Positions 992 to 58,601 of a stretch of DNA of 64,000 bases are shown piece by piece; within the stretch, counting starts at the first letter, position 1; every line of letters begins with the position of its first letter. The stretch is taken from contig JBLDXI010000002.1 in the NCBI GenBank assembly GCA_047495785.1, forward strand, positions 2,418,001 through 2,482,000, read 5' to 3'. This DNA is from Lepidodermella squamata (Eukaryota > Animalia > Gastrotricha). A model generated the notes under the pieces. It was not told the DNA's origin. It saw nothing but the letters and a program-made list of their open reading frames with translations, and did not search any database. The translations under genes were made by a program, and so were the position numbers.

Positions 992-3900
992 TCAACCTTC
1001 GCTCCTGTACCTATACGATTCGCACACGGCCAAGTCCGCGCCAGCATCACATCTCACATCATCCAAGTAGTAGCCCTGTGGGAAGGTCTTGAAAGCCGGG
1101 AAGAACCTGTAAACCGCACAATCATCGACATTTTGCGGCTCGTCAGTGCTATCAGTGCCACCCCATTGTCTCGCAGTTGAAAGAGGCTCGAAATTGGTAC
1201 CGTCAATCCACTTCATAGTACCAATTGCAATCGGTACTCGACGCACTCCAATCATGCTTTTAATAGTGCTGTTGGGACGCTGAATAACACTCCTCAACGA
1301 AGTTTGGTCCGCTGGGGATTTAACAGTTGCTAGCTGGCCAAAATTTTGCAAGCAGATTCGCTGAGCCTCTTGAAAATACAATATTTGCTCATTCGGATCA
1401 ACGACGAAGTATCTCTTAGCAGCCTTGACGCAACTCAGTCTATCCGGGAAGTAAATATCGACCGGCACTTGAGTTTCGCTATCCCAACACTCTGAAACAG
1501 AAGAAAAATAATATATTGTTTTCCTAAAAATTCCAATCTCACCCAAAGCTCGGCAAGACACTCTCCCATTCGGTCCGATGCAACGAACGTATCCAGTCTG
1601 TGGAACAATTAAATTTTAGTTATTAATGTAGGTTGAGCCCAAAATACCTGAGGATAAAGATAATTCTCACATATGACGCCAGTAATTCCCTGACTGCAAT
1701 CTTGAAGTTCCAGGTAAAGGTCAGTTAGCGTTTGGTAAAGAGTGGTTTTTCGCAGTTTCGCGCACCATGCCTTTTCATTTCCATCATAATCATAATCGGC
1801 ATTCATTATTGCTGCATATAAAACAACGTTATTAATTAACATTAAGAAATAATTATGCTGAGAAACCTGGAAAAGGTGTCGAACTCAACGACTCGTCAAT
1901 AGCCTTCAAGGGTGAACCATCGACCCATGTAGCTCCACCCAAAGGTTTAGGGTCAATGCCCATCCAAAGCTTTGTATCAACGGGGAAACTTTTGCCTTCG
2001 CGGCGTAGCCTGATCAAATCTGACGAATTTTGAAGTGTTGCCAACTGTCCCCCTCCGATAGCGCAGTAGGACCTCGCATCGGTGAAGTTTGGTGACATTG
2101 CAGTATCAAACGCTGTGTACACCCGTTGTGCCCTCTTGCAGTGATCCAATGTCAGGAAGGCCTGCGCCTTCGGCAGTTGCATCTCAGTTGACGAGCATTC
2201 TTCAAATTTCAGGAATTAATAAGTTGGGCAATTGTTGGTCAGGAAACTTACGATCTGGGGGTAGAACGCATCTGGCGAATCCCGTTCCATTGACGCATCG
2301 AATAACTCCGGCTGTTCGTGCTGAAGTCGTTGAGGAGGACGAGGACGATGACGATGATAAGGATGAAGCAGGTTTCATGGTCTCGCAAATGGCGCTGGAA
2401 ATCACATCTCGGTAAACACATGGAACGTCGTTCATATAGTAATTTTGATTTTCGTTGTAAAACTTGATAGAACCGCAATTATCAGGACCTATAAAATAGA
2501 TATTTATGATGACATATTTACATTGAAAATTGCTTTCTACCATTCGGCTCAGGATCTGCCCAAACTTGGAAACCTTGAGGAAAAGGAGCTCCATCGACCC
2601 ATTCGTATTTGCCCTGATTACGGACAAGACCCGTCCAGCTGCCTGATACGGGCATATTGATTTTGGTGACAGACAAGTTTTGCACCGCCGTCAATTCTTG
2701 CTGAGTAAGGATCGTAACTGGTTGGCCGCCGTCGACATTGCACAATTGGAAAGCGCTTTCGAAAGTGTTGACCTTGATTGATTGATAAACGAAGTAAAGA
2801 TCTTTCACAGCCGATTCACATTCTGCCTGGGTAGCGAATCCGACGCCAAGTGGCATTTGCCTCTCGTTCGCTCCGCTACAACCTTTGAAGCTAAGTTAGA
2901 CGAGCTATTGAAGCGATAAGCGATGACTACCTTCAGCTGTAGGAACGCATCTTTTCCAAGAGCCACCATCCGAATTGACACATCGAACGAAGCCGGTCGC
3001 CTGGAATACAATGGAATGGTTGTCAATATGTATAGTGGTAAGGACCTACCGGGGGATCGTAAGTTTCGCATACAGCAGCAGTGAAAGTTTCCTCACGGTA
3101 ACAGGTATCATCATTGAGGTACATGTCCTTCGGAGCTGAGCCGACCTTATTGAACATAACAAACTCTGTGCACGTTTCCCAACTTTGCCCTAACATCAAG
3201 ATATTAGAATTTAGCGCGAATTCAAGCTATTATACGACAGTCCTGGTACCATTCGGCTCACCGTCACCCCAAAGACCGGGTACGAACTGGTACGGTGAAC
3301 CATCATGATATCGGAATCCATCGTCTGATTTTCCAAGACCAAACCATGCCACGTAAGTTCCCTCGCCGATGAGCCCATTCGCGTGAATGACCCCTCTGAG
3401 TTGTTCCAGCTCAGCTTCACTCTTCACAGTCGCCAGTTGTCCTCCAGCTTCACTGCACCGTTGCCTCGCTGCCGAAAAAACATGTCATTTCATGCGATGT
3501 GCCGTTTTTACGCCTACCTGCGTCAAAGCTATCAATATAGTTCAGATCATCATTAACAGCAAAGAATCGTTTCACGGCTCCATCGCAGTCGGATTTCGAA
3601 GAAAATGACTTCGTTGGCGGCATCTGGTAAGAGCTGTCACCGCACCCATCTAAAATCCAGTATAACGGATCAACAGGTCATGGATTCATTCCGAGCATAC
3701 CAGCAGATGATTTAGGCACACAGCTAACTGCCCCGTTCGTGATGTTAATACACCGAATATGTTCGACGTTGGTATTGGTTTGCGGCGCCTTCACCTCTAC
3801 ACCAAAAGTTTCGCAGATCGTACCTCTGCCTGGCGAGGCTTTGTCTGCGACGTTGACCATGCCAGAGCGCGTGTAAATAGCCCTTGGATATTGACTCGCA

Positions 3901-6900
3901 GGTTGGATAGGAGCGCCACTTTGCCAATTTGCGTATGTCACTTTTTCGTCATCAATCCAAAAGTAAGTAGCAAGAAGGTATGTTACCCCAACCCAGCCAA
4001 CATCCAGGCCTTCCTTAGCCATCACATCCAACAGCATTTGATGCTCGTCCGAATTTTTGACAGTCGCCAGTTGACCATTTGCGCCCAGGCATAAATCGTT
4101 TGCTTGACTAAACGTCCCAACGCTCTGACCAGTCGGTGGCTTTATCACGAAGTAAGACTTCTTGGCATTCTGGCAATCTGACTCTGTAAGAAATAAGCGT
4201 TTTGGGGGCATCTGCCTGTTCCAGGAATCAGCGCAACCTGAAAAAGTATAATGAAATCATCATTAGGCAACAGCTTTCTGTCACGAAACTGTTAATATTG
4301 CCAAGGAAGCAAGTCACAGCACCGCCTGTACTCGCGCGAATACAGCGACGCCATCCAATCTTTTCAAAATTCAAATGATTAAATCAGGCTTTATTTCAGT
4401 TTAGAAGTCGCTTACGAAATTGATACAATCAACATAATTTGGTTCGAAATATCTCGATCGATTAAACACTGCCATCTAAACATGAAAAATGCCTTTCCTA
4501 GGCCAAGTCAGAGAAATTGGAGACACATACCTCAGTCTCAGTTTGAGCATCACAAACATCGTCAGAGCACCGGAAGGTTCCGTCTTTTTTGGCGCAATAC
4601 CTAGCTACCTATTTGGTTGGAAATTGAATGACTACACATGAGTTAGGAATTCGTCGACTGGCTTACTCCAAGAGTGCACTTTTCAATGCTACTGTAAACC
4701 GTGTTGCTCAGCGTTCTCTATGTGTAGGAGGAAAGCAGCCTTCCAAGAGTTGGAAAATGTGGACAGGACTTACATAGCCCGGCGAGCATCCAGGTGTTTT
4801 TGGGACGCAGCTTGGATCCCTTCGATCTGCGTCAACGCATCGTATTATCTCAACCTGAAATATTAATCAAGCGTGAGAACAATTCCCTATGGGTGATCTC
4901 AACCTACGTTTGCCTTGCAAACTTGGAGAGCGCGGCTGTAGTTTTCCTCCAGATCGTTAAAGCTGTCGAAAACTTCGATCTAGTAAAAGATAGATTGAAA
5001 ATCGAGCCTGATAACAGTTATCCTCTCATTTTACCGAGGTGCCCTTGTAGCAGTTGTAAGTAGAAACTGCGTATTCATTCGTAGCACTGTTGAAGCAACA
5101 CATAGCGGTCTAAAAATTAATACTCAAAATTGCAATAATTTAATTGATTGCCATACCCCTGTTTGACACAGATCCAACGTCTGGAAGTATTGAAGCGAGG
5201 CCGCAGGATCTAAAGGGGTGAGCTGTAATCCAAAAAATATATCCACATTGACGGGACTACAAAACGGCTTTTACATCTACAGCGCCGAGATTGCTACAGC
5301 CGGGTGACATCCGTTGACAACCTTTGAACTGACGGGTGCTAGGATCAATGCAGCGGGTGAAAGGCGCTGAAAAATGCATATTTTACTCACTCTTTACAAG
5401 GATTCAATAGGAACTAACTGCAGTCGGGTAGTAAGCATTGGTCAGTTTTATCGATGCTAGTATAGCAATAAGCGACTTTCTGACCCTCTGGGTTGCGGCA
5501 AGTAGCGGCCGATGGAAGCACTGCGCCTCCGGGAAACAACAGAGGGCTCAGGTTTGTTTTCATCGTCCACGAAATGCAAGGATCCGCACGGGCAGTGGTA
5601 GCCATGGAACCTTCGTAGTCGTAACCAGTGTTCGTGAACGTACACTCCTTAGTTAAACGCGTTGCCCTTTGAGCCCCGCAAGTCGCGTAGGCGACCATAT
5701 AAAACGATATAGTAGCTGTCGAGGGGTCAGGATAGAGTTGCTGGTTGTGATGCAGCGTCATAACAACCCATTTAGAGTTAGTCTCAAACAATCGACCAGC
5801 CTTGACGGAGCTCAAACAGATCCTGTAAAAACCACAATATTGAACGTTACTCAAATTAATTCTAGGCTCACTTATTTTTAGGCTCGGCGAAATTTGGTGG
5901 CGCTCTTATTTCAACGTAGCTCCAGCAACCATTTTCTATCAGAAAATGCAACCGAAATTAACTAAAATTAAACTCAAAGGAGTTAGGGCGAACCATCACC
6001 CCCGAGTTCGGGAGATCTCTCCAGCGCGAAAACCAAGCCGGTGCCAGTGGTTGACACGTTCCAGTAGCATTCGCCACTGTTGTAGATACCGGAGCCAACG
6101 AAAATTCGGCTTTTACCACAGGGTGGGACTTGAACCGATCCGCCGCAGTTCGGTAAGGACGGAGGCATGGTGTCACAGTTCGGGGCGGAGAATCCGCGGG
6201 GACATAGGCACGTCGAGCAAGTGCTAGGGTTCATGTAGCCGTTGTTCTCGCACTTGATATCTGTAGCTCCGCATCTCAACGCTTAAAAAATAGCCAGAAA
6301 AATTATTGGTTAAATATTAATAAATGATAAATAATCGAAAAATTCAGATAATGTTAATAAATTTATTAACTAAATTAATTATAATTATTAATTAATTAAT
6401 AGATTTATTAATAATTAATTATAATTATTATATTAAATAACACTTGAAAATCGGGCAATACAAGCTTTCAACTATTTTTTCGAACGTCCAAGCTATTACC
6501 AAATCGATTCGTATTTTAGAAAAAATTATTTTCTGTTTTGCGGGTTCCCATAAAAGTCAAGGAAAAGCAATCGATTTCACAGACTTGCCTTTGCAATTAT
6601 AGTGGAGATTTATTTTTTGAAAGTCAATGAAAGAGATGAATTGTGTTTGACCAAGGTTGTATTGAAGACGAGGATCTACTGTCGTGATAGTCGGCTTGTT
6701 TGGCGTGCTTTTCCAGAACCAACTAGGATGGGTACTCGACTCTGTATCGTAGCTTGTGCCGTAGTTGTTGTCGTTCGGATCAATAGCGAACAGCGCAGCC
6801 GAAGATCTATTTTTTGCAATTAAAAGCGTGAGAATGATTCAGAAAAAATTTGCTCACGCAGGGACATTTGCCGTTTGCACAGAAACATATGTATCTCGAT

Positions 6901-7549
6901 CAGTTCTGACATGCTCATAATTCTGAAATTTTTACAGAAATTAAGCGTCCTTTTAGGGTGGGGAAAATAGGCGAGCGTACCAGCCCCAATGCTCGGCCAA
7001 TCAAGGCTGAAATCTGCGGAACCTAGTAATTAGGAAAAAATTAAATTAATTCCCAACATTGAATTTCGAATTTATTTACGCTCGTCATGCATGACTGACC
7101 CAAAATGACGTAGTTAGGAGGCGCCGTCATGCCAACTTTTGCGAAGCACCTGGGTATATGAAGATAAATTCAAAATTCAAAATATTTTACGAATTTTCGT
7201 TACTCTTGGCCTAGCGTGAATATCATCACGTTTGGCGTTGTGATATCGAATTCTGGAGACCACGTGTCGGGTAGTGGAGTAAAAACTATGCACGTTGATT
7301 TGGACCAAATAGTCATCGCAATTTTTATGTTGTTGACGTAACGACTAGCTTGAACCCGCCAAAATCGATCGCAGGGACAATTTATAAATTTAGACAATTT
7401 AGACAATTTAGCTCACCCAAGTTTGTAGTATCGATAATGTAGTTCACAGTTGCGTTAGGCCATAAGCCAGCTGACCGGGGAATTCCATCTACTCCGCAAT
7501 GGCAACACAGTCCAATGACGATAAGAACTCCAATCGCAGAAATTTTCAT
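992..7549 (-). CDS. Secreted mosaic protein paralogue 1 (multi-exon): signal peptide, inactive astacin-like domain, EGF, CUB, kringle, Cys modules, 5 C-type lectin domains
   Basis: ATG at 7549 (MKISAIGVLIVIGLCCHCGVDG|IPRSAGLWPNATVNYII). Astacin-like exons include ALIGRALGL|NYEHVRTDRD and YDTESSTHP. EGF: CENNGYMNPSTCSTCLCPRGFSAPNC. CUB: CGGSV...CYWNV...CWSYVEIR. Kringle: YDYEGSMATT...CISW...CRNPEG...YCYT. Five CTLDs (C...GQLATV...W.DG...EPN/EPQ...C...D..C...CE). GT-AG introns; stop at 992. Confidence 0.88.
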
Positions 7550-8814: not shown

Positions 8815-11800
8815 TTAACCACCATAGTTGCCACTTGACCCTTTCGATTTGCTATAAGTCTCGCATACGATCACGTCTGCTACGCAGGCGCTGTCGTCGA
8901 GGTAGTAGCCCTGCGGGAAGGTCTTGAACGCTGGGTAAAACTTGTACACCCCGCAATCGCCGTTGCCTTGCGGCTCGTCAACTGCATCAGTCCCGCCCCA
9001 TTGCCTTTCGGGGCTAATTGTTTTGAAATCGGAGCCGTCAACCCAAATGCCCGCGGTCGTACCCGCAACTCTGCGCAATCCGATCAGGCCAGAAGGAGCG
9101 TTGGGGAAGCGTTGAAGAGCAATTCGCAACGCATTTTGCTCCGTTCCAGTCTTAACAGTTGCAAGCTGGCCGTAATTTTCCAAGCAGATACGCTGGCCAT
9201 CATCGTAAGAACGTATAGTCTGATTCAAATTAACTACGATGTATCTCTTCTCAAGGTTCCAGCAGGTAGTTCTGTCCGTGTAAAACGTATCAACCGGAAC
9301 TTGGGTTTCGCCAGGTACACAAGCTGAAATGAAAATTCGAAAACTATGATTCAAAAAACATCAAAAATTGATACTTGAGAGTCTGCAAGTAACTCTTCCA
9401 CCAGCGCCTACGCATCTGACGTATCCATCCTAAGCATATGAATCAATTTTAGCCATGTCAAAGCCATGTGTAGAGTACCCGAGGAAACAGAATGTTTTCG
9501 CAAATGAGACCGGCGAATCGTTGGTTACACATTGACATCTGGGAGTAGAAGTTGAACACGCGATCAGGTATTACAGCGTAGAACATTGCCGCGCAAGCCG
9601 TCTGGCCTGAGAAGTAATATAACGGCTTCATTTTTCCGATAAATAATTGTAAAAACCTGAGAAATTCGGATTCCCATCAATTAGAGCCTGTTGAGGTGTA
9701 CCATCGAGCCACTTGAGAGCGGATGGGGGACTAGGAGCCAAGCCGATCCAGTGCGCCGAGCCGATGGGAACTGTAAATTTCTCGCGGCGAAGTCTGACCA
9801 AGTCAGACGCAGTAGGAACAATTGCCAACATCCCGTCTCCCGCAGCACAGTGTGCCTTGGCTTCTTCAAACGATCGCGACATAGCGGTATTCACCACAGT
9901 GTACACACGCTGGGCCCTCATGCAGTGGTCAATCGTTAGAAAACGCTGTGATCTGGGCAGCTGCATCTCATTAGAGGCGCAGGCTTAAAGATGAAACAAT
10001 AACGTTGACAGAGATATCGAAGATGCAAACTAACTATTGGGCGCTACGACGCATCGAGCGGACCCAGTTGAATTGTCAACACATCGGATGACGCCAAGTG
10101 ATGAAGACGAAGACGATGAGGATGATGTCGAGCTTGTGGCAGGTTTCATCGTTTCGCAAAGCGCAGCGGAGAAGAAGTTTTTCAGCACACATGGGACGTC
10201 GTTCAGGGCGTATTCGGCATTGTAGAGTTGCAAACCGCCGCAGCTATCAGGACCTATGAATAAGGAGTAAACTCTGGGAGTTAATTATTATTAACGTACC
10301 GTTAGGCTCAGAGGGGCCCCAAATGCTGAAAGCTTGGCTGAAAGGAGCTCCATCGACCCAGCGGTATTCGCCATCCTGGGGTCGCGTTAGTCCAAGCCAT
10401 CCCGGCCTCTGAACGTTGGCGTCGGCGGTTACGAAGTCTCGCAAGGCTATCAGTTGACTCTGATCTAGAACAGTAGCTGGCTGGCCACCTGCAGCGTTAC
10501 ACAATTGAAAAGCGGCCTCGAAAGAGTTGGGCGTGAAATCATTTGACACAGTGTAAAACTCCTTAACGGCAGCTTCACAATCCGCCTGGGTAGGGTAACT
10601 AACATCCAGAGGCATCTGTCTCTCAATTGGTCCGATACAACCTGTGATGAGACAAATTAATTCGCTCTAGTCATTTCAAATCAAGCTCGTCATCACCTTG
10701 ATTAACATCAACGCACTTCTTCCATGCATCATCTTGCGGGTTCACACATCGTACAAATCCCTTCGCCTGAAGAACATTATGACAATTGTCGTAATAATAA
10801 TGATAAATGTCATAAAATGAAGGAAACCAACCGGGGGATCATATGTTTCGCAGAGAGCTGCGCTGAAATGGGAACCGTGTTCGCAGGTATCATCATTTAG
10901 ATAGACATTTCTCGGAGTCGAGTCCGTTGGTTCGAAAATGGCGAACTGGGTGCAAGCCTCTCCACTTCCACCTATAAAGTCATATACCTCACAAGTTATT
11001 TCAGTCGACCATCAAGGGCTTAAAGCTACTTGCCATTAGGCTCATTCGGGCCCCAGAGACCAGGGACAGCTGTGAAGGCTGAACCGTCATGCCATTTTAA
11101 TTCACCACTGGCAGATTTTACGAGACCGAACCAAGCCACGTACGTCCCTTCACCAATCAACCCGTTTGCGAAAATAGCTCGCCTGGCGTTCTTCAACTCA
11201 GCCTCACTCTTCACCGTCGCCAGCTGCCCACCAGCGTTCCTGCAGCGTAGTTTTGCTTTTAAGAATAAAACAAAGTTGAAATGTCATCAGCATACCAGGA
11301 TAGCTATAGATTACCTTGATCGAGATTCTGAATGTTTTGAAAATCATCATTTATTGCGAAGAACCGTTTAACAGCGCCGTCGCAATCATCTTTATTTGCG
11401 AATGATTTTTGCGCTGGGACTTGATTGGAATTACCGCATCCTAAGGAAATTCAACAAAATTAGACATATAAAATAAGAACATTCCCGATATTTTCACCAG
11501 TAGATTTCGGCACACAGCTAACCGTTCCGGCCAAGCTGTCAACGCATCGGACATGTTCAACATTGGCATTATTGGGTTGCTTAACCTGCTCAAATCTTAT
11601 CGTGAATGAAATTATGCTAAGAAATAGCTTTCAAGTAGATAACCTCATCACCGAATGTTTCGCAAATCGCTCCTCTGCCTATTACATTAACCTTCTCGGA
11701 ATTCGATAGGCCGGATTGTGTGTATATGCCGTAAGGGTAACGGTCGACTGGCTGCAAAGGACTGCCACCTTGCCAAATGGGGATCGAGAGTAGCTCGCCG

Positions 11801-14800
11801 TCGTTCCAAATAAAAGTAGAACCACTGTATAATACCAGCCCAACCCAGCCATCTGTCAGGCCCTGCTTATACATCAAATCCTGCAACGCCATGTTCTCGT
11901 CCTGGCTCTTTACAGTCGCCAAATCACCGTTGGCGATACGGCAAAGTTCTCTCGCTTGCTCCCAGGTGCCCACGCTTTGCCCGGCCGGTGGTTTTACCAC
12001 AAAAAATGACTTCGTAGCGTTTTCACAATCTGATTTTGTGAGGAATATGCGCCTTCGAGGAACTCGCGCAGATTCGAGGCATGCTGCAAGTAAAAATTAA
12101 GCGTCACTAACATTCAGGCGATAGTGGAATCTCCAAACCGTCATAATTTGCTGTACGGCAACTAGCGGAGGGCTTCAGCCCCACTATTACACAGCGAACC
12201 CAACCAACCTTTCCAGAATAGAAAAGTGAAATAAAAACGATAATATTGAATCGATTCGCCTACAAAGTTGATGCACGCTCCGTAATTCAGGTCAAAAAAT
12301 CTCTCTTGATTGAAGACTACCGCCTGTGGAAAACGTTCTCAATGATTAGAGCCATTGATTGTAGCAGGCTAACCTCTGTCTCAGTTTGGCCGTCGCAAGC
12401 ATCTTCAGTGCACCGGAAGGTTCCGTCATTTTTGGCGCAATACCTTGCAATCTATTATAGTGAAAAGAGAAGATCATCTATAAAATAAACGAGTTTTCAT
12501 GTTGAGCTTACGCCAAGAGAGCACTGATCGAGGCTACTGTAGACATCCCTGCTCAATTCCATCTGTAATTTAGAGATAGTGATTATATAACATGTTCAAG
12601 TTGATAGCTTACAGAGCCCGGCGGGCACCCTGTTGCCTTAGGAACGCATGCGGGGTTTCTTTGATTGGCATCAATACATCGTACCAAGTCGACCTGTAAT
12701 CAACGCACTGAACCGCTTAAAAATTGGCAAACTCGCCATGAATATCAACCCACATTTGGCTTGCAGACCTTTAGGGCCGCATTGTAGTTGTCGTCAAGAT
12801 AGGGAGAACTGTCATAAACTGCCACCTGTAAAATTGCAAACAAGAACTCCATCGAATAACTCTTTGCATGGGTTTATACTGTGTTGTAATTGGAGCAGCC
12901 GTAACTTCCTGGAGCCACTACGTATTCATTTGTAGCATTGTTGTGGCAACAAAGAGCAGTCTGCAATAGCAGGAATTCGTGAAAGCGCAATTTTGAGGCA
13001 TATTAAACCTACCCCTTTTTCGCAGATATCCAAAGTCTGGAAAGTTAGTACCCGAGTCGCAGGGTTAATCGGAGTGATCTTTATATAAGGGATTAAAATA
13101 TGTTCTGGCATTTCCTTCGTTTATAACTTACTTCGACCAACGGCTTCTTCTCATTGCCGCTACACCCAGGTACAACCATTACACAGCCAGCGAACGACCG
13201 AGTGTTTGGGTCAATGCATCGACTATAAGGAGCTGTGATGTCATTCATAAGGTCATTAAAGATTCGGCAGATTAAATCAAAACTAACTGCACTTAGGAAC
13301 TATGCATCGGCCTGTTGTACTGGTGTCGTTGTAACAATAGGGAAACGTTTTTCCCTCTGGGTTGCGGCACGCTGCCCCAGACGCTTGCAGGTCGCCCTTA
13401 GGGAAGAGCAGCGGGTCCAAATTAGTCCTCGACCATGACATACAAGCTTGGCCACGGGTCGCCCTAGCCATCGAACCTTCGTAATCGAGGCCAGTCGACG
13501 TAAATGCGCATTCCTTCGTCAGAGATGACACCCTCTGGCTTCCGCAAGTCGCGTAAACGGTCATAGTGAACCCGATTGAAGCTGCGGCTGGATTTTGGTA
13601 AAGTTGCGGGTTGTGGTACAGCATCATCACAGCCCAATTGTTGTCCGTCTGAAACAAACGGCCGGCTCTGATTGTGATGTTGCAGATCCTAAAAAAACAA
13701 CGATGATCACACGCCAGTAGTTTGGCTGGAAAATGGGCGCACTTGTTCATGGGGTTAGAGAAAGGTTTCGATCTTATCTCTAGGTAACTCCAGCAGCCAT
13801 CGTACTCTATAAACAAAGGCCCAATTTTCGAACAAATAATGGAAAAATAGTTGGCAGTGGCTTACGAGCTCCGCCGAGGTTGGGCAAATTCTCCAGAGCG
13901 AAAACCATTCCGGTGCCTTTTGTGGTTACGTTCCAGAAGCACGCGCCTTGGCCGTAAACGCCTGGAGTTAAAGAAATTTGAGCTGTCCCGCAAGGCGGGA
14001 CATCGACTATTCCACCGCAATTTGGTATCGTTGAATCGGCCAGTCGCTCGCAGTACGTGCCGGCGAACCCAGGCGGACAGTTGCACGAGGTACACGTGCT
14101 GGGATTCATGTAACCGTTGTTTTGGCAGTCCATCTCAGCTCCCCCGCATTTCAAAGCTGAAATTAAAGTGGTTGAGAATTTTTCAATGAAATGATTAAAC
14201 CGAGTGCCATTTTGTAGATAATTTCGAATGTTCTCCAAGTGAAATTCTGCTAACTATATTCATGCCAACATTTTCCCGCGATTAATGACTCCCGGGGGAT
14301 CTTGTTGATCATCTTAAATTTATAATCGCTCAAACTTAAAAAATTTCCCTCACGTGTCTCCGATGATGAAATGTATGCCAAATGCCTTTTGATTTGATTT
14401 AAAGGGTAACTAAAACTTCCGAAATTCAATACTTTGCGAACAATTTAGCAAAAAGCTGGAGGACGCCCATTTTTTTTAAATATTATCGAATGTTATTATT
14501 TACCTTTGCAATGATAATGTAGATTTATCTTCTGAAAATCGACGAAAGAGATGAATTGAGTTTGACCAAGAGTATGCAGCATGCGCGGATCCTTCGTCTT
14601 CAATGTCGGCTTGTCCCTATCGGTTTGCCAAGCCCACCAACCAGGATGCGAGCTAGACTCATAGTCATAGGGCGTATCGTAGTTGTTGTCGTCCCTATCT
14701 ATGTTGAACAACGCTGCATCCTCCCTTTTGATCAAAAATCAAGGTAATCAAAACAGTTCAGATATTTTCGACTAACGGTTCGGTATTCTCTTGTATCACT

Positions 14801-15432
14801 GAGAGGTAATTTTCTCGATCAGTTCTAACATGCTCGTAATTCTATAATGAGTGGCAAATTCATTTTGAAGTTGAGAAAAAAGCCAAAACTTGCCAATCCC
14901 AGTGCTCGGCCAATTAGGGCAGCTATCATCGGAATCTATAATAATAAATACCACTAAGTATGATAGCGGCTGGCATCAAATAATTCCCTTGATACTTTTT
15001 TAACGCAAGTAAACGCCAGGATCACATAATTAGGCGGTGAATTCCTGCCAACTTTCGTAAAGCAGCTAAAATGAAAAAATTGAAGTTGGAATAAAATTCT
15101 GGCTAAAATAAATTACTCTCTGCTGTATGAAAATATCAAAAGATTCGGTATTGTGACGTCGAAGTCCCGTGTCCATGGGATAGGCAACTGCTTGAAAGTG
15201 ACGCACGTAGATTGGGACCACATAGCCATCGCCGCCTCAATGTTTGCGACCGATTCACCTTTTGAGTCAATAAAAATTCAGTCAACTTACTATCGTGAAA
15301 TCGCGACAAACCCAAATGTGTCGAATTATCGATAATGTATCTCACGGTTGCGTTCGGCCATAAACCGGCAGATTTCGGGATGGCTTCTACCGCCGATTGG
15401 CAGAGTAGAGCTAACACGAAAATATAGATCAT
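8815..15432 (-). CDS. Secreted mosaic protein paralogue 2 (same architecture)
   Basis: MIYIFVLALLCQSAVEA|IPKSAGLWPNATVRYII; ALIGRALGL|NYEHVRTDRE; YDYESSSHP; EGF-CUB (13807-14160), kringle (13283-13520) and five CTLD exon groups colinear with paralogue 1; stop at 8815. Confidence 0.88.
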
Positions 15433-15913: not shown

Positions 15914-16082
15914 ATTATGAAAATGTTTCACACAAAGCATGAGCCTCTTCTTGTAGAGAGCAAGCGTCCCAGTAAAGACCTGGCTCAGCGCCGACCTCGA
16001 GCTGGGCTGATGGGTAATTAATGAAGCGAGCAACGAAATCACGACCCGGATTTGAAGGCTCCATTGTTGGCACTTGGCACCG
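15914..16082 (-). pseudogene. Orphan copy of the 3' end of the small C-type lectin gene (26895-27060)
   Basis: Highly similar to 26895-27055 and reads VPTMEPSNPGRDFVARFINYPSAQLEVGAEPGLYWDACSLQEEAHALCETFS*. No upstream exons; it starts just past paralogue 3's AATAAA (~16094-16099). Confidence 0.8.
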
Positions 16083-16287
16083 TCCGTTAAATATTTATTG
16101 AAATCGATAAAGGGAATAACCACGAAAAATATACTAGTATCAGTGCATTGATATTCTGTGAAATAAGACGATGTTATAAGACTGACTTCAATTCTTCTCC
16201 AATTATCGTCATTCATCTTGAAATGTCTCTATAGGAAAAGTGTGGAATTGCATTTAAAGATCTTTTCGGCTTAACCATTAAGATCGG

Positions 16288-19200
16288 TTAACCATTGCCC
16301 CTTCCTCGTTTTGATTTGGAGAAAGTCTCGCAAACGATCAAGTCCGCTTCACATGCGCTGTCGTCGAGATAGTAGCCTTGCGGGAAGGTCTTGAATGCTG
16401 GGAAGAATTTGTAAACCCCACAATAGCCGTTGCCCTGCGGCTCGTCAACTGCATCAGTTCCGCCCCACTGCCTTTCAGGGCTAATCGGTCTGAAATCGGT
16501 GTCGTCAACCCACGTGAATCTCGTGGTCGTACCAACTCGGCGCAAACCGACTAGGCCAGAAGGGGCGTTGTCGAAGCGTTCGAGAGCACCTCGCAGCGAA
16601 ATTTGCTCCGCTGCAGTTTTAACAGTTGCAAGCTGGCCGAAATTTTGCTGGCAGATACTCTGGGCATCACCGAAAGATCTTATGGTCTCATTCAAATTAA
16701 CGACGATGTATCTTTTCTCCGCCTTAAGGCAGCTAAATTTGTCGAAGAAATACTTATCCGCTGGGACCTGAGTTTCGTCTTCATTACAGGCTAATAAAAA
16801 GAAAATGCATAACCTCACATTAAATGAAAGAGCATGAATACATACCTTCTGCTCTGCAAGCTACCCTATTTTCAGGGCCGCCTTGGCATCTAACATATCC
16901 AGTCTGAAATAACTCTCATATTAATATGTCTCGCTATCTTCACTATAGACTACCTGAGAAAATAGAATGTTTTCACATGCCAGGCCAGAAAATTCTATTT
17001 CGCAGGGAGACAACTTCTCATAAAAGTTGACCACCCGAAAAGGTAGTTTAGCTTTGAAAACTGTCGCACAAGCCGTCGCACCTGAGAATGACAATAACCT
17101 GCCTTCGCAAAACTTTTATGAGGAATGTTTCTGCAAACCTGGGAATGGCGATGAACTGCCATCTACGAGAACAAATGATGAACCATCGAGCCACTTGAGA
17201 TTTGAAGGGGGACTAGGAGCCACGCCAATCCAGAGTGTCGTGCCAATATCAACGTTTATGTTCTCGCGGCGCAGCCTGTCCAAGTCGAACGTAGTAGGGA
17301 TCGTTGCCAACTGCCCACCTCCCGCAGCACACTGCGACCTTGCATCGGCGAACGTTCGCGTCATAGCGGTATCCAATACAGTGTAAATCCGCTTCGCCTT
17401 CATGCAGTGTTCGATCGTTAGGAAATATTGTGCTCTGGGCAGCTGAATCTCACTCGCAGCGCAGGCTTTATAACCAAACAAAAATACTTGGTGTGGTCAG
17501 AAATCGAACTTCTGAAAACTAACTCTTGGTAGCTACAACGCATCGAACTGCCCCAGTTGAATTGTCTACACATCGCGTCACGCCAACGGTTAGAGCTGGC
17601 GTTGAAGAAGAGACCGAGTTCCCTGCAGGTTTCATTGTTTCGCAAAGAGCTGTGGAGAAGAAGTTTTCTAGCACACATGGTACGTCGTTCATGAAGTAAA
17701 CGATATCATCGTATAGTTGCAACCCGCCGCAGCTTTCGGGGCCTGTGAAAAATGAATAAAAAGGGGTAAAAGATCAACTTTCATGTCGCATAAACGCACC
17801 ATTCGGCTCCCCGGGACCCCACAGGCCAAAGTTGTCGAGGAACGGTGCTCCATCGAGCCAGCGGTATGAGCCCTGGATTCGCATAAGCCCGAGCCAACCC
17901 GGTCTCGGTATCTTAGCGTTGTCAAACGGAATTAACGTTACGAAATTGCGCAAAGCTGTCAATTGTTCCGCGTTGACAATAGTAGCTGGTTGGCCACCTC
18001 CAGCATAACACAGTTGAAAAGCGGCCTCGAACGAGTTGACCGTGAAATTACTATTAGCAACGTAATAAAAATCCTTGACGGCAGCTTCACAATCTGCTTG
18101 GGTAGGGTAACTGACACCCAGAGGCATTTGTCTCTCATTCGGTCCGGTACAGCCTAAGATGAGACATAAATTTACTATAATAAATTCGATTATTCGATTC
18201 ATCTAAGCTTGAATAACCTTGATTAACATCAACGCATTTCATCCAGGAGGGGCCAGTTTTCGAGTTCACGCATCGCACAAACCCTTTCGCCTGAAAATGA
18301 TTTCGACGTCAAAAAATGACCTTTTTCAAAGACGGAAACCAACCGGGGCGTCATAAGTTTCGCAGACAGCTGCGCTCAAGTGCGAACCGTGCTCGCAGGT
18401 ATCGTCTATTAGATAGACATCTCTAGGAGCCGATTCCGTTTCGTCAAAAATTACGAACTCTGTGCAAGGTTCTCCACTTCCTCCTATACATAGGAAAAAA
18501 ATGATGTTGGTTATATTTTAGTCGTTCGTCTTCGATTGAGGCAACTTTCCATTAGGCTCGTTCGTGGCCCAGAGACCAGGGACATTTTGGTACGCGGAGC
18601 CATCATGCCATTGAAGTTCGCTGCCAGATTTCACGAGACCGAACCAAGCAACGTATGTATATTCGCCGATCAACCCGTTAGCGTAAATAACTTTCTTAAC
18701 TTTCTTCAATTCAGCCTCATTTTTCACAGTCGCCAACTGCCCACCAGCTTTCTTGCATCGCAGTTTTGCTATTAAGATTAACCATTGAAATGCAATATTT
18801 CACGGTGAACATATTGGCTAAACTACCTTCGTTGAGATTTTGAATTGCATGGAAATCATTTACAGCAAAGAAGCGTTTAACTGCGCCTTCGCAGTCATCT
18901 TTACTCGCGAATGATTTTTGCGCCGGCATTTGACTGGAATCATCACCGCATCCTGTCCAAATTAATACAAATTCCGCCATTTTAGGAACATTTCAATGTT
19001 ATACCAGTAGAAATTGGCACACAGCTAACCGCGCCGTTCGAATTGCTCACACATCGAACATGTTCAATATTGGATTGCTGCGCCTGCTTAAATCTCATTG
19101 TCAGGGGAAACACTGGGTTAGTTCTCAAGTAACCTCATCACCGAAGGTTTCGCAAATCGCCCCTCTGCCTGGCACTTTAGTGTTTTCGGCATTTGATAGG

Positions 19201-22200
19201 CCAGCTTGGGTGTATATACCCCAAGAATAGCGATCGGTTGGCTGTAAAGGAGCGCCACTATTCCAAATTGAGATCGACAGCTGCTCCCCATCGATCCAAG
19301 CAAAAGTAGAGCCACTGGACAATAACAGCCCAACCCAACCCTCATTCAGGTTTTCTTTAACCATCAAACCCTTCACCATCGTGTCCTCGTCCATGTTCTT
19401 AATAGTCGCCAATTGGCCGTTGGTGGCCAGACATAAATCTTTCGCTTGCTCGAAGGTGCCCACGCTTTGCCCTGCCGGTGGATTTACCACAAAATATGAC
19501 TTTTTCGCATTGAGGCAATCAGATTGTGTGAGAAATAAGCGTTTCCGAGGAACTCGCGCAAAGTCAGCGCATGCTGGAAAAAAATTAATTGTCTTATAAT
19601 CATTAGACAATAGGAAAAACCTCCCAACCGAAATTAGCTGCATAGCACTTCACACCATCATCGATGCAGCGAACCCATCCCACCTTCCCGAAATAGAGAA
19701 AAATATAGAACCATCCATAAAAATGTTGAATGGAGCTGCCTACGAAGTTCGCACATTCGCCGTAATTCGTGTAGAAAAAATTCGATTGATCAAAGACTGC
19801 CAACTGTGGAAATTGTTTTAATTACATGAGTCAATATTTGTAGGCCTGATGCTAACCTCTGTCTCAGTTTGGGCGTTGCAAACACCGTCAGTGCACCGGA
19901 AATATCCATCGTTTTTGGCGCAATACCTAACTATCTATGATGAAAAGAAAACATTCATTCATTTAGAACGAGGTTTCAAGTTGGGCTTACTCCGAGAGTG
20001 CACGTTTCGATGCTACTGAAGACTCTGCCACTGTCTAACTCTGTCTGTAATTAGGAGATAGGTATTGATGTTATAACACTTAGAGATACATTAAGATATA
20101 ACATATAGAAATCACACTGATAACATACATAGGCTATTGGGCATCCTGAAGCTCTCGGAACGCAGGTGGGATTTCTTTGATTGACGTCAACGCATCGTAT
20201 CAACTCAACCTGCAATTGAAAACAATTCAACACTGATGAACTCCCATGGAGCTCAACCTACGTTTGCCTTGCAGACCTTAAGTGCCGGATTGTAGTTATC
20301 CGCTAAGTAAACTCTGCTATCGAAAACTGCCACCTAAACGACTCGATGGGAAAAATCCTTTTTAATAATATTCGCAAAAGTTTACCACAGAGTAATCGTC
20401 TCCACTCGTGTAGCAGTTGTAATTTCCAGGAGCCACTACGTATTCATTTGTTTTTTTGTTCAGGCAGCAAACAGCAGTCTGCAAATGAAAGACACACTTG
20501 AATGCGTGATTTTAGTGCTACCCACATACCCCTGTTTCGCAATCATCCTCAGTCTGAAAGTATTCAATCGGCTTCGTAGGGTCCATTGGAGTGAGCTTCA
20601 TATGAGGGATGGAAATATATTAAACAGAATGATAGTATTATCAAAGTAGCTTACATCGATTAACACCCTCTTCGCCGTGCCGTTACAGCCAGGGGCATTG
20701 ACCTTCTCGCATCCTTTGAACGACCTAGTGATCGGGTCAATGCATCGACCGTAAGATGCTGTGAATTTATCAAACATATAGAAAACCAGCAAATCGGCAG
20801 ATTAATGAAAAGTCACCGCAATCGGGAACTGAGCATTTGCCTGCTGAGACAGCTCCGGTGTAACAGTAAGGCGAAACTTTTTTCTCGGGGTTGCGGCACG
20901 CGGCTCCAGACGCTAGCGGGTCGCCCTTTGGGAAGAGCAGTGGGTCCAGATTTCCAGGTTTGGTCTTCGTCCACGATAAGCATGCTTCATTACGGCTCGT
21001 CATGGCCATTGAACCTTCGTAATCGTAACCAGAGGTCGTAAATTTGCACTCCTTTGTAAGACGTGTCGCTCTCTGGGTCCCACAGGTTGCATAAACAGTC
21101 ATGATAAACCCGATTGAAGCCGTCGACCGATCTGGGTACAATTGCGGATTGTGGCGCAGTATCATCACAGCCCAATTGTTGTTAGCCTGATATAAGCGGC
21201 CAGCCGTAATTGTATTTTTGCAAATTCTGAAAAAATAATGCTGATATGACGCGCATCGATGTTTCACTGAAAAATGGGCATACTTGTTCTTGGGGGCAGA
21301 GAAAGGTTCCGATCTGATTTCCAAGTAACTCCAGCAGCCATCGTCTATGAAATAGAGCAATTTTTGATAAATGAAATAGAAACGAGAATTGCATTAGCGT
21401 ACCAGCTCCGCCGAGATCAGGCGATTTCTCGAGGGCAAAAACCAAACCTGTCCCTTTTGTCGTCACGTTCCAGAAGCACTCGCCTTTATCGTAAACACCT
21501 GGATTAATGGAAATTTGAGTTGTTCCGCAAGGTGGAACCTCGACAGTCCCGCCGCAAGTCGGTATCGAGGAACCAGCCAGTCTATCGCAGTGCATGCCGG
21601 CGAACCCAGGCGGACAGTTGCACGCGTTGCACGTGCTCGGATTCAAGTAACCGTCGTTCTGGCACATCATGTCAATTCCTCCACATTTGGAAGCTGAAAT
21701 AATAAGAATTTTGAATTAATTAACGAAATTGCGCAGTCAAAAAATTAATTGATTTTATGAACAATGAAGCTAGTAGCCTGATGTAATGGTTTTGCCTCCT
21801 AATTAATTGAGCGTATTCTCACATAGTTTTCGCAATTCATTTACGTGTGGTTCCCCACGTCTCAAAGCTGAAAATGTACAATCAAGTCTAAGGTATCAAT
21901 AATAATCTTTTCTTGTCCCAGCATATCGGAAAGCTCAAGCTAAAGCAGCGGATGAAAGATTTTCCCAAGTAAACACCTGATATTATCAGGAGATGAAGTC
22001 TTCTAAATAGCTCTATTTTTGCATTTCAAGGAGAGCCTCAGAAGTGGGCGATCCGGAAATTCGGAATTCGGTACACCCTTCGACGAAAAAATTCGTTGAA
22101 AATGAGCTGTTTTTGCGAAATTTTTCGCTGAATTTCTCCAGCTTCAGGAGGATGGAGGGTGCACATATTATCGGCCCAACTGCTGGCAATCTCTAAGTTC

Positions 22201-25200
22201 AAGACGAGGTCTATTCACCATAAAAAAAAATCCAATTTGAAGTAGTACAGCCGGATAAAAGCTTTGCCGAAATTGGAGGGTTTGTGCGAGAAAAGTGAGC
22301 TAAAAAACCCGCGCATTTTGTAAAAAAGATCCTGATTAAAGAGAACCACTTTGAATTAATGTTCAAGTTTTGCAGCCCGAGTTTCCTCTCCTGTACTTCT
22401 GTTCCGCCCCAGTGAAAATTTCGATTGCAGAATAACGCAAAATTTAGTATTTTAAGGCCATTTTCCGGCTTTCAGATTAGCGCATAATAAAGCACTTTTT
22501 GAGACCCCCGAACAAGACTATAATCTGAATTTTGGCTTGGATAGGTCGGTGTGCAGAATTCAGAATGCGCAATTTTACAATATGACAGCTATGTTATAGC
22601 TACCCTAGTGAAAATTTCGATCGCAGAATATTGCAAAATTTAGTGTTTTTAAGGTCATTTTCCGGCTTTCAGATTAGCGCATAATAGAGCACTTTTTGAG
22701 ACCCCCAAACAAGACTAATCTGAATTGTGGCTTGGATACGTCGGTGTGCAGAATTCAGAATGCGCAATTTTACAATATGCCAATTTACCGGTTTTCGTGT
22801 ATTTTCGTGTATGTCAGATATCGAACCGTAAAGGTACTGTATAGGTAACGTATGGTGGGTGGCAGGCCATTTGCCAGACACCTTTTAGGCCTTATGGACA
22901 GCTGGGGGCCCTCACGGCCATCAAGTGCCGCAACTCGAAAAATGTGGAAATCATTAAAATTTTAAGGGCATTTTTACGTTGGGTGTGGGTGAAATTTTTC
23001 AAAACCAGTAAATTCGTTTGCATATGCACCACTGCCCTAAACCAAAACCTACAAGTCCACGCCAATGAGCATGGTTAAATGTGCCAAAATGCATTTTACT
23101 CGTTAGCAAATGTAAAATAACGCATTCTTGGGTTTCATTGAACCATGCTTAAAGTGGCTTTGAAAAATTTTACCCCATATTTTCACTAGGGTATACTATG
23201 ATGCTCATTGGCGTAGACTTGTAGGTTTTGGTTTAGAGTAGTTGTGCATATGCAAGTGAATTTACCTGTTTTGAATGTAATTTCACCTTATGACCCACAC
23301 CCAAAGTAAACATGCCCATAAAATTTCAATGATTTCCACATTTTTCGAGTTGCGGCATTTGATGGTCGTGAGGGCACCCTGCTGCCCAAAAGGCGTAAAA
23401 GGTGTCTGGCAGATGGCCTGCCACCCACCATTCGTTACCTATACAAAACCTTTACGGTTCGATATTTGACAAAAATACACGAAAACCGGTAAGTTGGCTA
23501 TCATAGTATAGCTATAACATAGCTGTCATATTGTAAAATTGCGCATTCTGAATTCTGCACACCGACGTATCCAAGCCACAATTCAGATTAGCCTTGTTTG
23601 GGGGTCTCAAAAAGTGCTTTATTATGCGCTAATCTGAAAGCCGGAAAATGGCCTTAAAACACTCTCAATTTTGCGTTATCGCGAAAAAAACGTCGCAGAA
23701 AAACCTGAATAGTTTTTAAACGACACCATCTACCCTAGTGAAAATCGGTTGCACAAAACTGACGAAAAATGCAGATTGCACCAAAATGCTGCTTAATTTG
23801 GCACCTCCACTCTGAGGTATTTAGCAAAAACTTTCAAAATTCAATTCACCATTTTTCAGGCAAAAATTTTTGTAGAAAAGCGCATTGAGCAACTTTTAAA
23901 TGGTGAATTTTGAAAGTTTTTGCTAAATACCTCAGAGTGGAGGTGCCAAATTAAGCAGCAAATTATTGGAAAATCTCGAAACTATCAATGGAATTACATT
24001 TTTCCAGGTATCTTTTCGAATTTCCCATAGGTTGCGCAACTATTTTGTAATCTGGCAACCTTTCGTAGGAAATTCAACTAATTTTATCAAATTAAACATA
24101 CCGAGAGAATATTCCATGTTTTGTCCGCGATTTTACCGGAAAGTATTAAAAATTAATTTTTGTAATTTTCCGATGGTAACTTCGATGGTAACCCCGATGG
24201 TAACTTGTTCGGTAATTTTTAGTATTTTACCCGGTTAGACAAAATTTCTCCGAGTTGACATATTTAATCCCATTAGTGGCATACTCGCTTACTATTCTCG
24301 TGATTTTTCGAAATTTTCAAAAAAAATTCTGGCCACAAGATGGGTTTTCCAACGGTACCAAATTCGAGGCATAATGGAAGTTACCTGTCTTCAACAAAAA
24401 TAGAAAAGGTAGGATGTCTCTAAACGTCGATTTGGGACCCCCTATTTCCCAGTCAATCTGAATTTTTTCTTGAAATTTTTACCAGGGGCTACTGACATCA
24501 TGAGCTCTCGACTGGCAAATAAAAGTTGACCTTCGTCGACGGGAATTCGGTACAGGAGACCTCAAAGTTTAGGCCTCACGTGGTGCAATTTTGGACATAA
24601 TAAATGCGTTGAGCTAAAAATAGCGGGAAAAAATTTGAATCGAGTTTGGATGACGTCATCAGTATCTTGGCACCATGTGCGCATTTTTCGGAATTTCAAT
24701 AAAAGTTTCAAGTTCTGCACGCATCCCGACAATTATGAATATGCAAATGAGGTGTCAAAATTTACCCCATAAGTGTCCAAATTTAGCCTAACCACGAACC
24801 ATTTTTATAAAATCAAGGTAACATGGGAAAACTACCAAATTTTGCACAGAAATGTGAAGTGGCCCCCCCCCCCCTCATGCCCTGAAATTTTCACGTGTGT
24901 ATAATTTTTTCCTGATTTTCTAGAGCTGAAAACCATGTTTTTGTCCAAAATAACCACCATTACGGTAGACAAAAATGGATGGAGACGCCAAAAATAAAAT
25001 AGACAAATCGATAGAGACAAATCCATTTAAACAGAGAGAAGAAAATCCATCCTTTAAAACTCGCCTTTGCAATTGTAATGTTGATTGATCTTTAGAAAAT
25101 CGAGGAAAGAGACGAATTGAGTTTGACCAAGAGTGTATAGCATGAGAGGATCTCTTGTTTTGAATGTCGGATTGTTTACTTGGCTTTGCCAGAACCATAG

Positions 25201-26016
25201 AGGTTGCGCGCTCGACTCAAAGTCATACGGCGTGTTGTAGTTGTTGTCGTCATTATCGATGCTGAACAAACCTATCGTGGACCTTTTGATTAAAATTAAT
25301 TATTTAACTAATAAATTAAAATATATCATCTTTAGATGTAAACTAACGGTGGAACATTTTGCGATACCACTGTGAGGTAGCTTTCTCGATCAGTTCTAAC
25401 ATGTTCGTAATTCTATAGAAGGCAATCAATAATTTTTACAGTTGAAGATATGAAATTGGCAACTTGCCAATCCAAGCGCTCGGCCAACCAGGCCAGCAAT
25501 AATTGGAATCTAAAAATGAACTTAATTTAGTTCAATATTAGCAGATCTCCTATAGTACTTTTGTCGCGCAATGGCTCCCCAAGATCACGTAATTAGGCGG
25601 CGAGGTCATGCCAACTTTCGTAAAACACCTGAAAATCAAAAATTCAAAAAATTACGGAGGATTGTTTTGCAAAAAAGTACTTTTTGCCGTATGAGAATAT
25701 CATAACATTTGGCGTTGTGACGTCAAAGTCCGCTGTCCAAGCGACGGGCAGCTTGGTGAAAGTAATACAGGTGTATTGGGACCAAAGCGCCAATGCCGCC
25801 TCGATGTTCGCGGCATATTCACCTTGAGTCAGTCAAAATTAAATTAGCATTTAATTGTTGAATTATCTACGAACCCAAATGTGTCGAAGTATCGATGATG
25901 TATCTAACGTTTGCGTTCGGCCATAAACCGGCAGATTTCGGGATGGCTTCTGCCGATTGGGAGAGTAGACCCAAGACAAGAATGCAGAGTGGCCAGAGCC
26001 TGCTGACCCAGTTCAT
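16288..26016 (-). CDS. Secreted mosaic protein paralogue 3 (same architecture; ~3.4-kb repeat-filled intron)
   Basis: ATG at 26016 (MNWVSRLWPLCILVLGLLSQSAEA|IPKSAGLWPNANVRYII); GLVGRALGL|NYEHVRTDRE; YDFESSAQP; EGF-CUB from 21694 downward; kringle ~20815-21060; five CTLDs; stop at 16288. Confidence 0.87.
22408..23680. mobile_element. Composite nested MITE-like / foldback repeat in the paralogue 3 intron
   Basis: Direct duplication (~22408-22585 vs ~22603-22780). Long imperfect inverted arms (~22630-23072 vs 23201-23680). Internal unit 22603-23191 is bounded by CCCTAGTGAAAA/TTTTCACTAGGG with TA on both sides. Confidence 0.8.
23787..23960. repeat. Near-perfect inverted repeat (~60-bp arms)
   Basis: tgctgcttaatttggcacctccactctgaggtatttagcaaaaactttcaaaattca ... 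tgaattttgaaagtttttgctaaatacctcagagtggaggtgccaaattaagcagca. Confidence 0.9.
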
Positions 26017-58400: not shown

Positions 58401-58601
58401 TTTCAGTGATAGTAAAATCAGAATAACTCTAAAAAGGAAGAGAATTGTTAAAATGTTGAGGCGATGTTGAAGGCAGGTCGTAAAAGTGACTTCTGTCGCG
58501 GCTAATGACTTGGCGAGTGGCGCGCGCGAGGTGTATTTGCCCGAGAGTGGCACACATAAGCCGACGAGTGGACTTGACGCCACGTCGCTTGTTGTTGGGC
58601 G

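Follow-up and report, generated by a model that had tools for sequence, protein, structure and literature searches.

Predicted non-catalytic astacin homologues with kringle and C-type lectin domains form an old, constrained gene family in the gastrotrich Lepidodermella squamata

Three neighbouring genes, named here A, B and C, lie on the minus strand of a 64,000-nt stretch of the genome of the gastrotrich Lepidodermella squamata (GenBank assembly GCA_047495785.1, contig JBLDXI010000002.1, positions 2,418,001 to 2,482,000). This whole stretch is referred to as the window, and positions are given within it unless a contig is named. The three genes encode large proteins with the same order of domains: a signal peptide, an astacin-like domain, a putative EGF domain, a putative diverged CUB domain, a kringle, a Cys-rich linker and five C-type lectin domains (CTLDs). 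By every sequence criterion the astacin-like domain is non-catalytic, and yet the genes have been maintained under purifying selection. We consider it probable that A, B and C are functional, secreted, non-catalytic homologues of astacin rather than decaying genes, and that their products are soluble, multivalent, Ca2+-dependent glycan binders.

The former zinc site and the start of the protein

A six-frame motif scan of the window places the string GRALGL on the minus strand at 6981-6998 (gene A), 14894-14911 (gene B) and 25468-25485 (gene C). In all three genes it is followed, across one short intron, by NYEHVRTDR, and the spliced motif reads ALIGRALGL/NYEH in A and B and GLVGRALGL/NYEH in C, the slash marking the intron. 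The former Met-turn appears on the same strand as SSTHP at 6725-6739 (A), SSSHP at 14643-14657 (B) and SSAQP at 25201-25215 (C), and the scaffold motifs W...TC, R.DR..Y and KIN.HY.C are present too. The scan thus recovered the motifs quoted in an earlier reading of this stretch, made from the letters without database searches (the original prediction), where that reading had put them.

How do these strings relate to the zinc site of a working astacin? When aligned by HMMER with crayfish astacin (PDB entry 1AST), the Tyr of NYEH falls on residue 102, which we take to be the third zinc-binding His in astacin numbering, and the family-specific Glu that follows it is retained. Counting back through the conserved Gly, ALIGRALGLNYE superposes on HExxHxxGxxHE: the first His is replaced by Ala (Gly in gene C), the catalytic Glu by Leu, the second His by Arg and the third His by Tyr, and in the series A/G-L-x-G-R-A-L-G-L-N-Y-E the Gly and the final Glu are the only positions of the active motif that are kept. 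Similarly, ESSSHP superposes on the ES/SS/GS-[LI]MHY of meprin alpha, medaka HCE1 and zebrafish ZHE1, with Ser, Thr or Ala in the window genes at the Met of the Met-turn and Pro at its Tyr zinc ligand. These PDB and HMMER alignments bear out the proposal that all three His and the catalytic Glu are replaced and that the Met-turn has become SSTHP, SSSHP or SSAQP. The pattern HE..H..G..H occurs in no frame of the window. An alternative exon with an intact HExxH, which the original prediction had named as the kind of finding that would contradict it, is likewise present in no frame of the gene regions, where the only two H[ED]xxH strings are off-frame readings of EGF exons and neither is usable.

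Markers of the astacin fold are retained around the altered site, namely four putative scaffold Cys, the Gly of the motif, the Glu after the third-His position and the C-terminal helix. The four Cys stand at the expected places in A, B and C (STC, CFTKVG, TC before the helix, and HY.C), their pairing as C42-C198 and C64-C84 being assigned by eye with astacin numbering as the guide, and the retained Glu is the residue that holds the mature N-terminus in active astacins (PMC9848320). The last astacin exon of each gene is recognised by Pfam Astacin (PF01400; MEROPS M12A) above its cut-off of 22.5 (gene B, E-value 3.3e-11, 43.7 bits; gene A, 4.4e-09, 36.7 bits; gene C, 2.1e-07, 31.2 bits), and the PDB matches of the astacin-like exons include meprin, HCE1, ZHE1, BMP1 and astacin.

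The mature-domain start, IP[KR]SAGLWPN, abuts the signal peptide, and A, B and C have no prodomain, the element that active secreted astacins need for latency (PMC9848320). In the hydropathy profiles the N-terminal signal peptide is the sole hydrophobic segment, with no transmembrane segment or other membrane anchor, which argues that the proteins are secreted, as had been predicted.

In consequence of these replacements we regard the astacin-like domain as non-catalytic, and we infer that it does not bind metal. A protease still active through other residues or another metal site is very unlikely. What could be invoked for it are the His kept in NYEH and, in most copies, the His of SS[TS]HP; gene C, however, has Gln at the latter position, the three ligands, the general-base Glu, the Met and the Tyr have given way to Ala/Gly, Leu, Arg, Tyr, Ser/Thr/Ala and Pro, and the prodomain on which latency depends is missing.

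Gene structure, transcription and the domains behind the astacin fold

All-against-all BLASTP of the stop-free minus-strand pieces revealed three paralogous gene bodies that are colinear and whose exons correspond one series to the next. The genes were modelled with a local splice-aware dynamic programme whose scoring was conservation among the paralogues; these models replaced one built from open frames only, in which the exons were over-extended. Borders are uncertain in the Cys-rich linker of the genes and, in gene C, also at both ends, at the big-intron junctions and near 16800-16950. Genes A, B and C are intact, with frames open across about 30 exons per copy; the stop codon of gene A ends at 992, and the A of the gene C ATG is position 26016. 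Introns are mostly 50-60 nt long. Gene A has canonical GT-AG borders at the intron within the zinc motif, B and C have GCAAGT...AG there (a GC-AG intron), and a model that allowed GT donors only missed this junction in B and C because the donor there is GCAAGT.

Contigs at least 99% identical to gene B were obtained from a public run recorded as 'RNA?' (X1). They contain joints that skip 53-60 nt with the plus-strand ends CT..AC: five, which are GT..AG on the minus strand, lie at 10642-10696, 12694-12753, 12826-12879, 13079-13131 and 13807-13865, and thirteen more lie outside this list. Four of the five agree with the gene B model and the fifth corrected it (exon end 10697, next start 10641). 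X1 coverage is zero over the 347-nt intron of gene B at 14157-14503, and a DNA run (X2) has none of the gene B joints. Therefore, gene B is transcribed and spliced. The joints connect the CUB to the linker, and another lies between CTLD2 and CTLD3. An in-frame 54-nt intron of gene B (13689-13742) has a strong polypyrimidine tract, and gene A has an intron at the same place. As a side observation, the introns at the zinc motif (14936-14995 and 14842-14893 in B; 25413-25467 in C) are absent among the X1 joints listed.

The original prediction had the astacin domain followed by EGF, CUB, kringle and five CTLDs. For the kringle and the lectin domains this stands directly on Pfam (on BLASTP for CTLD4 of gene B), whereas the EGF and CUB emerged only through profile and paralogue comparison. 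Pfam EGF families remain below threshold on single exons, the best E-values being 0.006-0.02 in gene C; hhalign paired a profile built on this exon in 11 members of the family with the nematode astacin EGF at a probability of 98% (E 1.3e-13). The CUB is split over three exons, by the introns 13807-13865 and 13689-13742 in gene B, and no copy encodes it in one exon. Its single exons have no Pfam match, and hhalign to nematode CUB bodies was not significant. BLASTP aligned the family exons with a paralogue in the same genome over the EGF and the N-terminal half of the CUB (E 2e-16) and over the C-terminal half of the CUB and the kringle (E 3e-23). The CUB of that paralogue passes Pfam CUB (PF00431) at 27.6 bits, and on this alignment the domain after the EGF is accepted as a putative diverged CUB.

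The kringle scores 37.9-40.6 bits in Pfam (PF00051) against a cut-off of 34.3 (about 1e-9 to 3e-10; 1.6e-09 in gene B) and aligns with human plasminogen at E 1.2e-17, all six Cys included. No Pfam match was found in the Cys-rich linker. Each protein has up to seven copies of a hairpin-like pattern, xxRC[VI]-x(5-9)-C-x(3-8)-C, which is seen in the linker and again ahead of every lectin domain. Pfam Lectin_C (PF00059, cut-off 22.6) recognises all five lectin exons of gene A, at 23.2-30.7 bits, and four of the five in gene B; CTLD4 of gene B has an E-value of 0.016, yet it matches the other CTLDs in BLASTP at 1e-11 to 1e-12. Neither a start codon nor a signal peptide was found in the lectin half of the genes.

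Two non-coding features of the cluster deserve mention. An intron that measures about 300-350 nt in A and B is 3.4 kb long in gene C (21694-25060), where it contains an inverted repeat of about 1.1 kb that is complementary to itself with 79% identity (22633-23674) and repeats of 173-182 bp at 22407-22782 and 23509-23679; the insert looks like a foldback-type element. In addition, genes B and C share a non-coding element of 175 bp, placed 0.5-1 kb upstream of the respective ATG (15909-16081 and 26889-27063). It is 92% identical between the two genes, though their synonymous sites have diverged (synonymous divergence, dS, about 0.67). No third copy exists in the 121-Mb genome, Rfam does not match the element and its fold is unremarkable. 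It could have a regulatory role common to both genes or be an untranslated exon upstream of each. An Rfam scan of the whole window gave no match.

Family history, selection and active-looking relatives

A family of three genes, as originally described, turned out to be an undercount: there are four tandem copies at this locus and at least 14 in the genome (151 contigs totalling 121 Mb, in which astacin has 154 matches at the level of exons). Gene D, the fourth copy of the tandem, is located immediately ahead of the window (C2:2410245-2416576) and has the same motifs and the lectin half. Ten further copies are found on contigs C9, C32 (two), C2 at 1.71 Mb, C48 (two), C10 (two) and C3 (two). The architecture is colinear in most copies, the two on C3 and one of those on C48 being matched in part only. 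All 14 copies carry [AT]A[ALT]IGR[AT]LGL/NYEH (AGLVGRALGL in gene C) together with ES[SI][STA][HQ]P. In a tree built from two exons, gene A groups with the C2 copy at 1.71 Mb and gene B with the C9 copy, gene C is their sister and gene D stands apart; the window cluster is not one clade, and the C48 pair and the C10 pair are each nearly identical. The dead motif being common to all 14 copies and the window cluster not being a single clade, inactivation predates the whole family and not just the window copies. The proposal that catalysis was lost before a triplication is thus right about the order of events, in that the loss precedes the duplications, and wrong about their scope, since the substitutions are shared by 14 copies.

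Pairwise ratios of nonsynonymous to synonymous divergence (dN/dS) are 0.14-0.45 in every domain, and the astacin-like domain, at 0.14-0.33, is among the most constrained; dS is 0.67 between B and C and saturated (>1.5) between A and either of them. These values were calculated on the first models, which read through one in-frame CUB intron in B and C. Genes A, B and C are old, constrained genes under purifying selection, in line with the proposed dead yet maintained astacin domain. Could they be decaying pseudogenes, or models that wrongly join astacin genes with lectin genes? No RNA contig covers a whole gene and not all exon borders of the linker are certain, which would suit such an explanation. 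Against it, about 30 exons are open in each copy, dN/dS lies well below 1 with dS up to saturation, the order of domains is colinear in most other copies (two on C3 and one on C48 being partial), the lectin half has no start codon or signal peptide of its own, and RNA joints connect CUB with linker and CTLD2 with CTLD3. Decay is, like hidden activity, very unlikely.

The genome also contains relatives that look active. At locus L015 (G000:C20:2663500-2672000, G000 being the genome analysed here) there are two tandem astacin genes with a signal peptide, an acidic-rich prodomain of about 250 amino acids (aa) before W..P..YYID, HEFAHALG[ML]/..HEHSR.DR, S[AS][LM]HY, EGF, CUB and kringle. The first of them, the one examined in full, has two Lectin_C domains, and in it the Met of the Met-turn is Leu (SALHY). 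The L015 genes and the dead family share the order of domains and an intron at the same place in the zinc motif (HALGM/..HEH versus RALGL/NYEH). They differ in that L015 keeps HEFAHALG..HEH and S[AS][LM]HY, the prodomain and a Pfam-positive CUB and has two lectin domains; identity in EGF, CUB and kringle is about 31-34%. The L015 genes are likely active relatives of the dead family. Because these active-looking paralogues have the same order and the same intron place in the zinc motif, the astacin-EGF-CUB-kringle-lectin layout is older than the loss of catalysis, and the dead family would have lost the prodomain and gained three lectin domains.

The presence of such paralogues invites a second explanation, in which the dead proteins act as decoys or dominant negatives: they would occupy the glycan or matrix targets, the substrates or the inhibitors of active astacin-EGF-CUB-kringle-lectin enzymes and so tune proteolysis. 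The astacin repertoire of the genome is very large, as the 154 exon-level matches indicate, conservation within the dead proteins is among the highest at the cleft scaffold and at the helix of the former active site, and pseudoenzymes commonly regulate their active relatives (PMC11266112). However, the dead proteins have five lectin domains versus two in the active relatives, and identity across EGF, CUB and kringle is just about 31-34%, so that shared targets would be a supposition. We consider this explanation possible, although on the unlikely side.

With regard to other members of the astacin repertoire, locus L014 (C7:88500-98400) is a cluster of HExGHALG astacins in which at least two of three genes have two kringle signatures. 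Kringles are greatly expanded in this genome, with at least 150 matches, many of them next to astacin exons.

The features of the window are collected in Table 1. Five neighbouring genes on the same strand, listed at its end, are ordinary animal genes. Homologues of the stomatin exon carry no taxonomic signal, and the closest of them is on a metagenome scaffold. A nematode spliced leader SL1 was found neither by pattern nor by Rfam, where the control gave no match either, and mitochondrial COX1 is absent from the assembly.

Table 1. Features of the window, with positions counted from its first nucleotide
Feature	Position	Strand	Remarks
Gene A	992..7549	minus	~29 exons, ~1,605 aa; local model guided by paralogue conservation; exon borders approximate
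Gene B	8815..15432	minus	~30 exons, ~1,565 aa; paralogue-guided model and RNA joints
Gene C	16288..26016	minus	~30 exons, ~1,600 aa; paralogue-guided model and Pfam
First exon, signal peptide directly followed by mature-domain start	B 15312..15432; A 7405-7549; C 25875-26016	minus	in B, MIYIFVLALLCQSAVEA then IPKSAGLWPNATVRYIID
Gene A exon with former zinc motif	6981..7022	minus	VPQISALIGRALGL; GT donor
Gene B exon with former zinc motif	14894..14935	minus	IPMIAALIGRALGL; GCAAGT donor, GC-AG intron
Gene C exon with former zinc motif	25468..25509	minus	IPIIAGLVGRALGL; GCAAGT donor
NYEHVRTDR exon	B 14773..14841; A 6858-6922; C 25348-25412	minus	PDB alignment to 1AST residues 102-124, BMP1, TLL1
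Last astacin exon, former Met-turn and C-terminal helix/Cys	B 14504..14720; A 6581-6806; C 25061-25282	minus	in B, ESSSHP and KINLHYHC; Pfam Astacin
Putative EGF, putative diverged CUB and kringle	B 13288..14156; A 5419-6281; C 20817-21693	minus	hhalign, paralogue homology, Pfam
Cys-rich linker, very short exons	B 12139..13232; A 4290-5366; C 19629-20758	minus	three RNA joints in B
Five C-type lectin domains	B 8815..12083; A 992-4237; C 16288-19573	minus	Pfam Lectin_C
Gene B CTLD1	11644-12083	minus	
Gene B CTLD2	10832-11440	minus	
Gene B CTLD3	10035-10641	minus	
Gene B CTLD4	9479-9983	minus	
Gene B CTLD5	8815-9323	minus	
Carbohydrate-sulfotransferase-like open reading frame	28369-29088	minus	
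Stomatin/band-7 exon	33394-33978	minus	Pfam PF01145 homologues
Leucine-rich-repeat membrane protein	39289-40656	minus	
Nuclear-receptor-like zinc-finger gene	51470-53242	minus	
Hairy/E(spl)-like basic helix-loop-helix (bHLH) gene	58041-58754	minus	

Proposed function and comparison with known proteins

What might a secreted astacin that no longer cleaves be good for? In the model that we favour, that of soluble glycan-binding proteins, the starting point would be an astacin whose lectin and kringle modules probably directed it to its targets. This ancestor would have lost catalysis and latency control, and its lectin array would have grown from two domains to five. The product would be a soluble, multivalent, Ca2+-dependent glycan-binding protein in which CTLD2 and CTLD3 bind sugar and the kringle, the CUB and the frozen astacin cleft serve as protein-binding modules. 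At an interface outside the cell, such a protein would tag glycosylated surfaces or matrix or join them by cross-links, in recognition, agglutination or matrix organisation.

Glycan binding had been part of the original prediction, and the lectin motifs are consistent with it for some of the domains; the roles in mucus, adhesion or immunity that the prediction also named are hypothetical. The usual site for Ca2+ and carbohydrate combines EPN or QPD with WND and a Glu ahead of the Cys. CTLD3 keeps the calcium and sugar-site pattern in A, B and C (EPN-G-P-[DE]-x-C...[LM]ND), and CTLD2 keeps it in A and B (EPN-x3-GE-x-C...LND). Several observations weigh against the glycan-binding model. CTLD1 and CTLD4 do not have the pattern, CTLD5 has an atypical EPQ...DD, and CTLD2 of gene C reads LID instead of LND, with loss of the Asn. 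Sugar binding is predicted here at the level of motifs. Moreover, the RNA evidence covers gene B only, and none of the X1 contigs runs from the astacin half to the lectin half.

A third explanation is that the proteins are structural or adhesive components of a matrix, such as cuticle, egg envelope, mucus or glue, and that their domains mainly act as cross-linking modules. The products are large, secreted and rich in Cys (76-79 per protein), they have 5-12 N-glycosylation sequons each, and the genes have expanded in tandem; in addition, the terms astacin, kringle and C-type lectin occur together in a paper on the transcriptome of the adhesive pedal disc of Exaiptasia (PMC6626399). On the other hand, the proteins have no low-complexity or repetitive segments except a short Ser run, RNA depth is modest in the one whole-animal run, and the conservation of the EPN/ND sites suggests specific sugar binding. 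We regard a mainly structural role as improbable.

A bolder version of the glycan-binding model can also be envisaged, in which the family comprises at least 14 pseudo-astacin lectins that are 'born mature'. The frozen cleft, in which an invariant Arg stands for the second zinc His and the former S1' site has a conserved wall rich in Trp, would be a ligand site. Together with the Ca2+-dependent CTLDs it would form a soluble system for recognition or agglutination, and the family would comprise the first pseudoenzymes of the astacin branch with a defined function. This version is speculative, and we think it unlikely to hold in full.

The original prediction, which noted astacin-EGF-CUB as a known order, could name no protein in which this order continues into a kringle and five CTLDs. 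The combination of astacin, C-type lectin and kringle domains is, however, not unknown: the active-looking paralogues of L015 have the same order of domains, and related combinations have been tabulated. A review of astacins names kringle and C-type lectin among the accessory domains, and its supplement tabulates S-PRO-CD-CLEC-KRING for A0A7I8VBN4 of Dimorphilus gyrociliatus and A0A6J8CIB2 of Mytilus coruscus (PMC9848320). When compared by domain listing, these two resemble the dead family in being secreted and in uniting astacin, C-type lectin and kringle domains; unlike it, they have a prodomain, a listed catalytic domain and one lectin domain before the kringle, with no EGF-CUB listed. The NAS-type astacins of nematodes give the best database matches for the last astacin exon and share the astacin-EGF-CUB order and the EGF pattern C.NGG...P..C..C.CP.G[FY].G..C, but they are distant (best E 1e-13) and have neither kringle nor lectin array. 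A dead astacin with CUB domains from Parastrongyloides trichosuri (P0007, UniRef100_A0A0N4Z5H7) also lacks the three His, the Glu, the Met and the Tyr. Its substitutions, Q..Y...S, are its own, and therefore it was inactivated independently. Another library protein, P0050, is an astacin-CUB-Lectin_C-TSP1-F5/8C protein.

Searched exon by exon, the protein libraries, which evidently do not include the proteome of the source species, yielded no close relative of the dead family. A profile of the last astacin exon found no orthologue among 1.84 billion representatives, its best true match being an astacin of Caenorhabditis auriculariae (1e-13), and a word-index search with the exon that carries CUB and kringle sequence, covering proteins of 105-336 aa, found nothing. 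The top match of the profile by E-value (P0001, 5,520 aa, E 3e-66) was rejected as a false positive: it consists of 56 weak matches of a 28-residue stretch to an unrelated repeat, ..QDDHNT.AT.AAEVSPAPSWWYRH...

Within peptidase family M12, the ADAM pseudoproteases (ADAM2, 7, 11, 18, 22, 23, 29 and 32, and unc-71) offer a parallel (PMC11266112). In them, too, the zinc ligands and the general base of a metzincin domain are substituted and the domain is kept as an extracellular binding or scaffolding module; unlike the proteins described here, they are members of the reprolysin branch with a membrane anchor and a prodomain, their Met-turn is usually intact, and they have no lectin domains. A 2024 review of inactive metallopeptidases lists no astacin-type pseudopeptidase (PMC11266112).

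The lectin half recalls another group of proteins. Members of the mannose-receptor family, which are bound to the membrane and serve in endocytosis, have a ricin-type head and 8-10 lectin domains. They share with A, B and C a non-lectin head at the N-terminus, a small disulphide-rich domain of kringle-like fold (FNII there, a kringle here) and a tandem array of CTLDs, just some of which retain the residues of a sugar site. This resemblance would be an analogy of layout and not evidence of common descent.

Pseudo-proteases are well documented among ADAMs, rhomboids and caspases, and the building blocks of the family, even its combination of astacin, lectin and kringle domains, are already known. 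The family would be a clear example of an enzyme turned binding protein and not a new kind of one. Its value lies in the natural experiment that it offers, because one genome holds the same layout in an active-looking and in a dead form. The dead form appears to have lost the prodomain and, in a single constant pattern, all of its catalytic residues, to have gained three lectin domains and then to have multiplied under purifying selection. Study of this family could show what use is made of the astacin scaffold without catalysis, and how lectin modules steer extracellular proteases.

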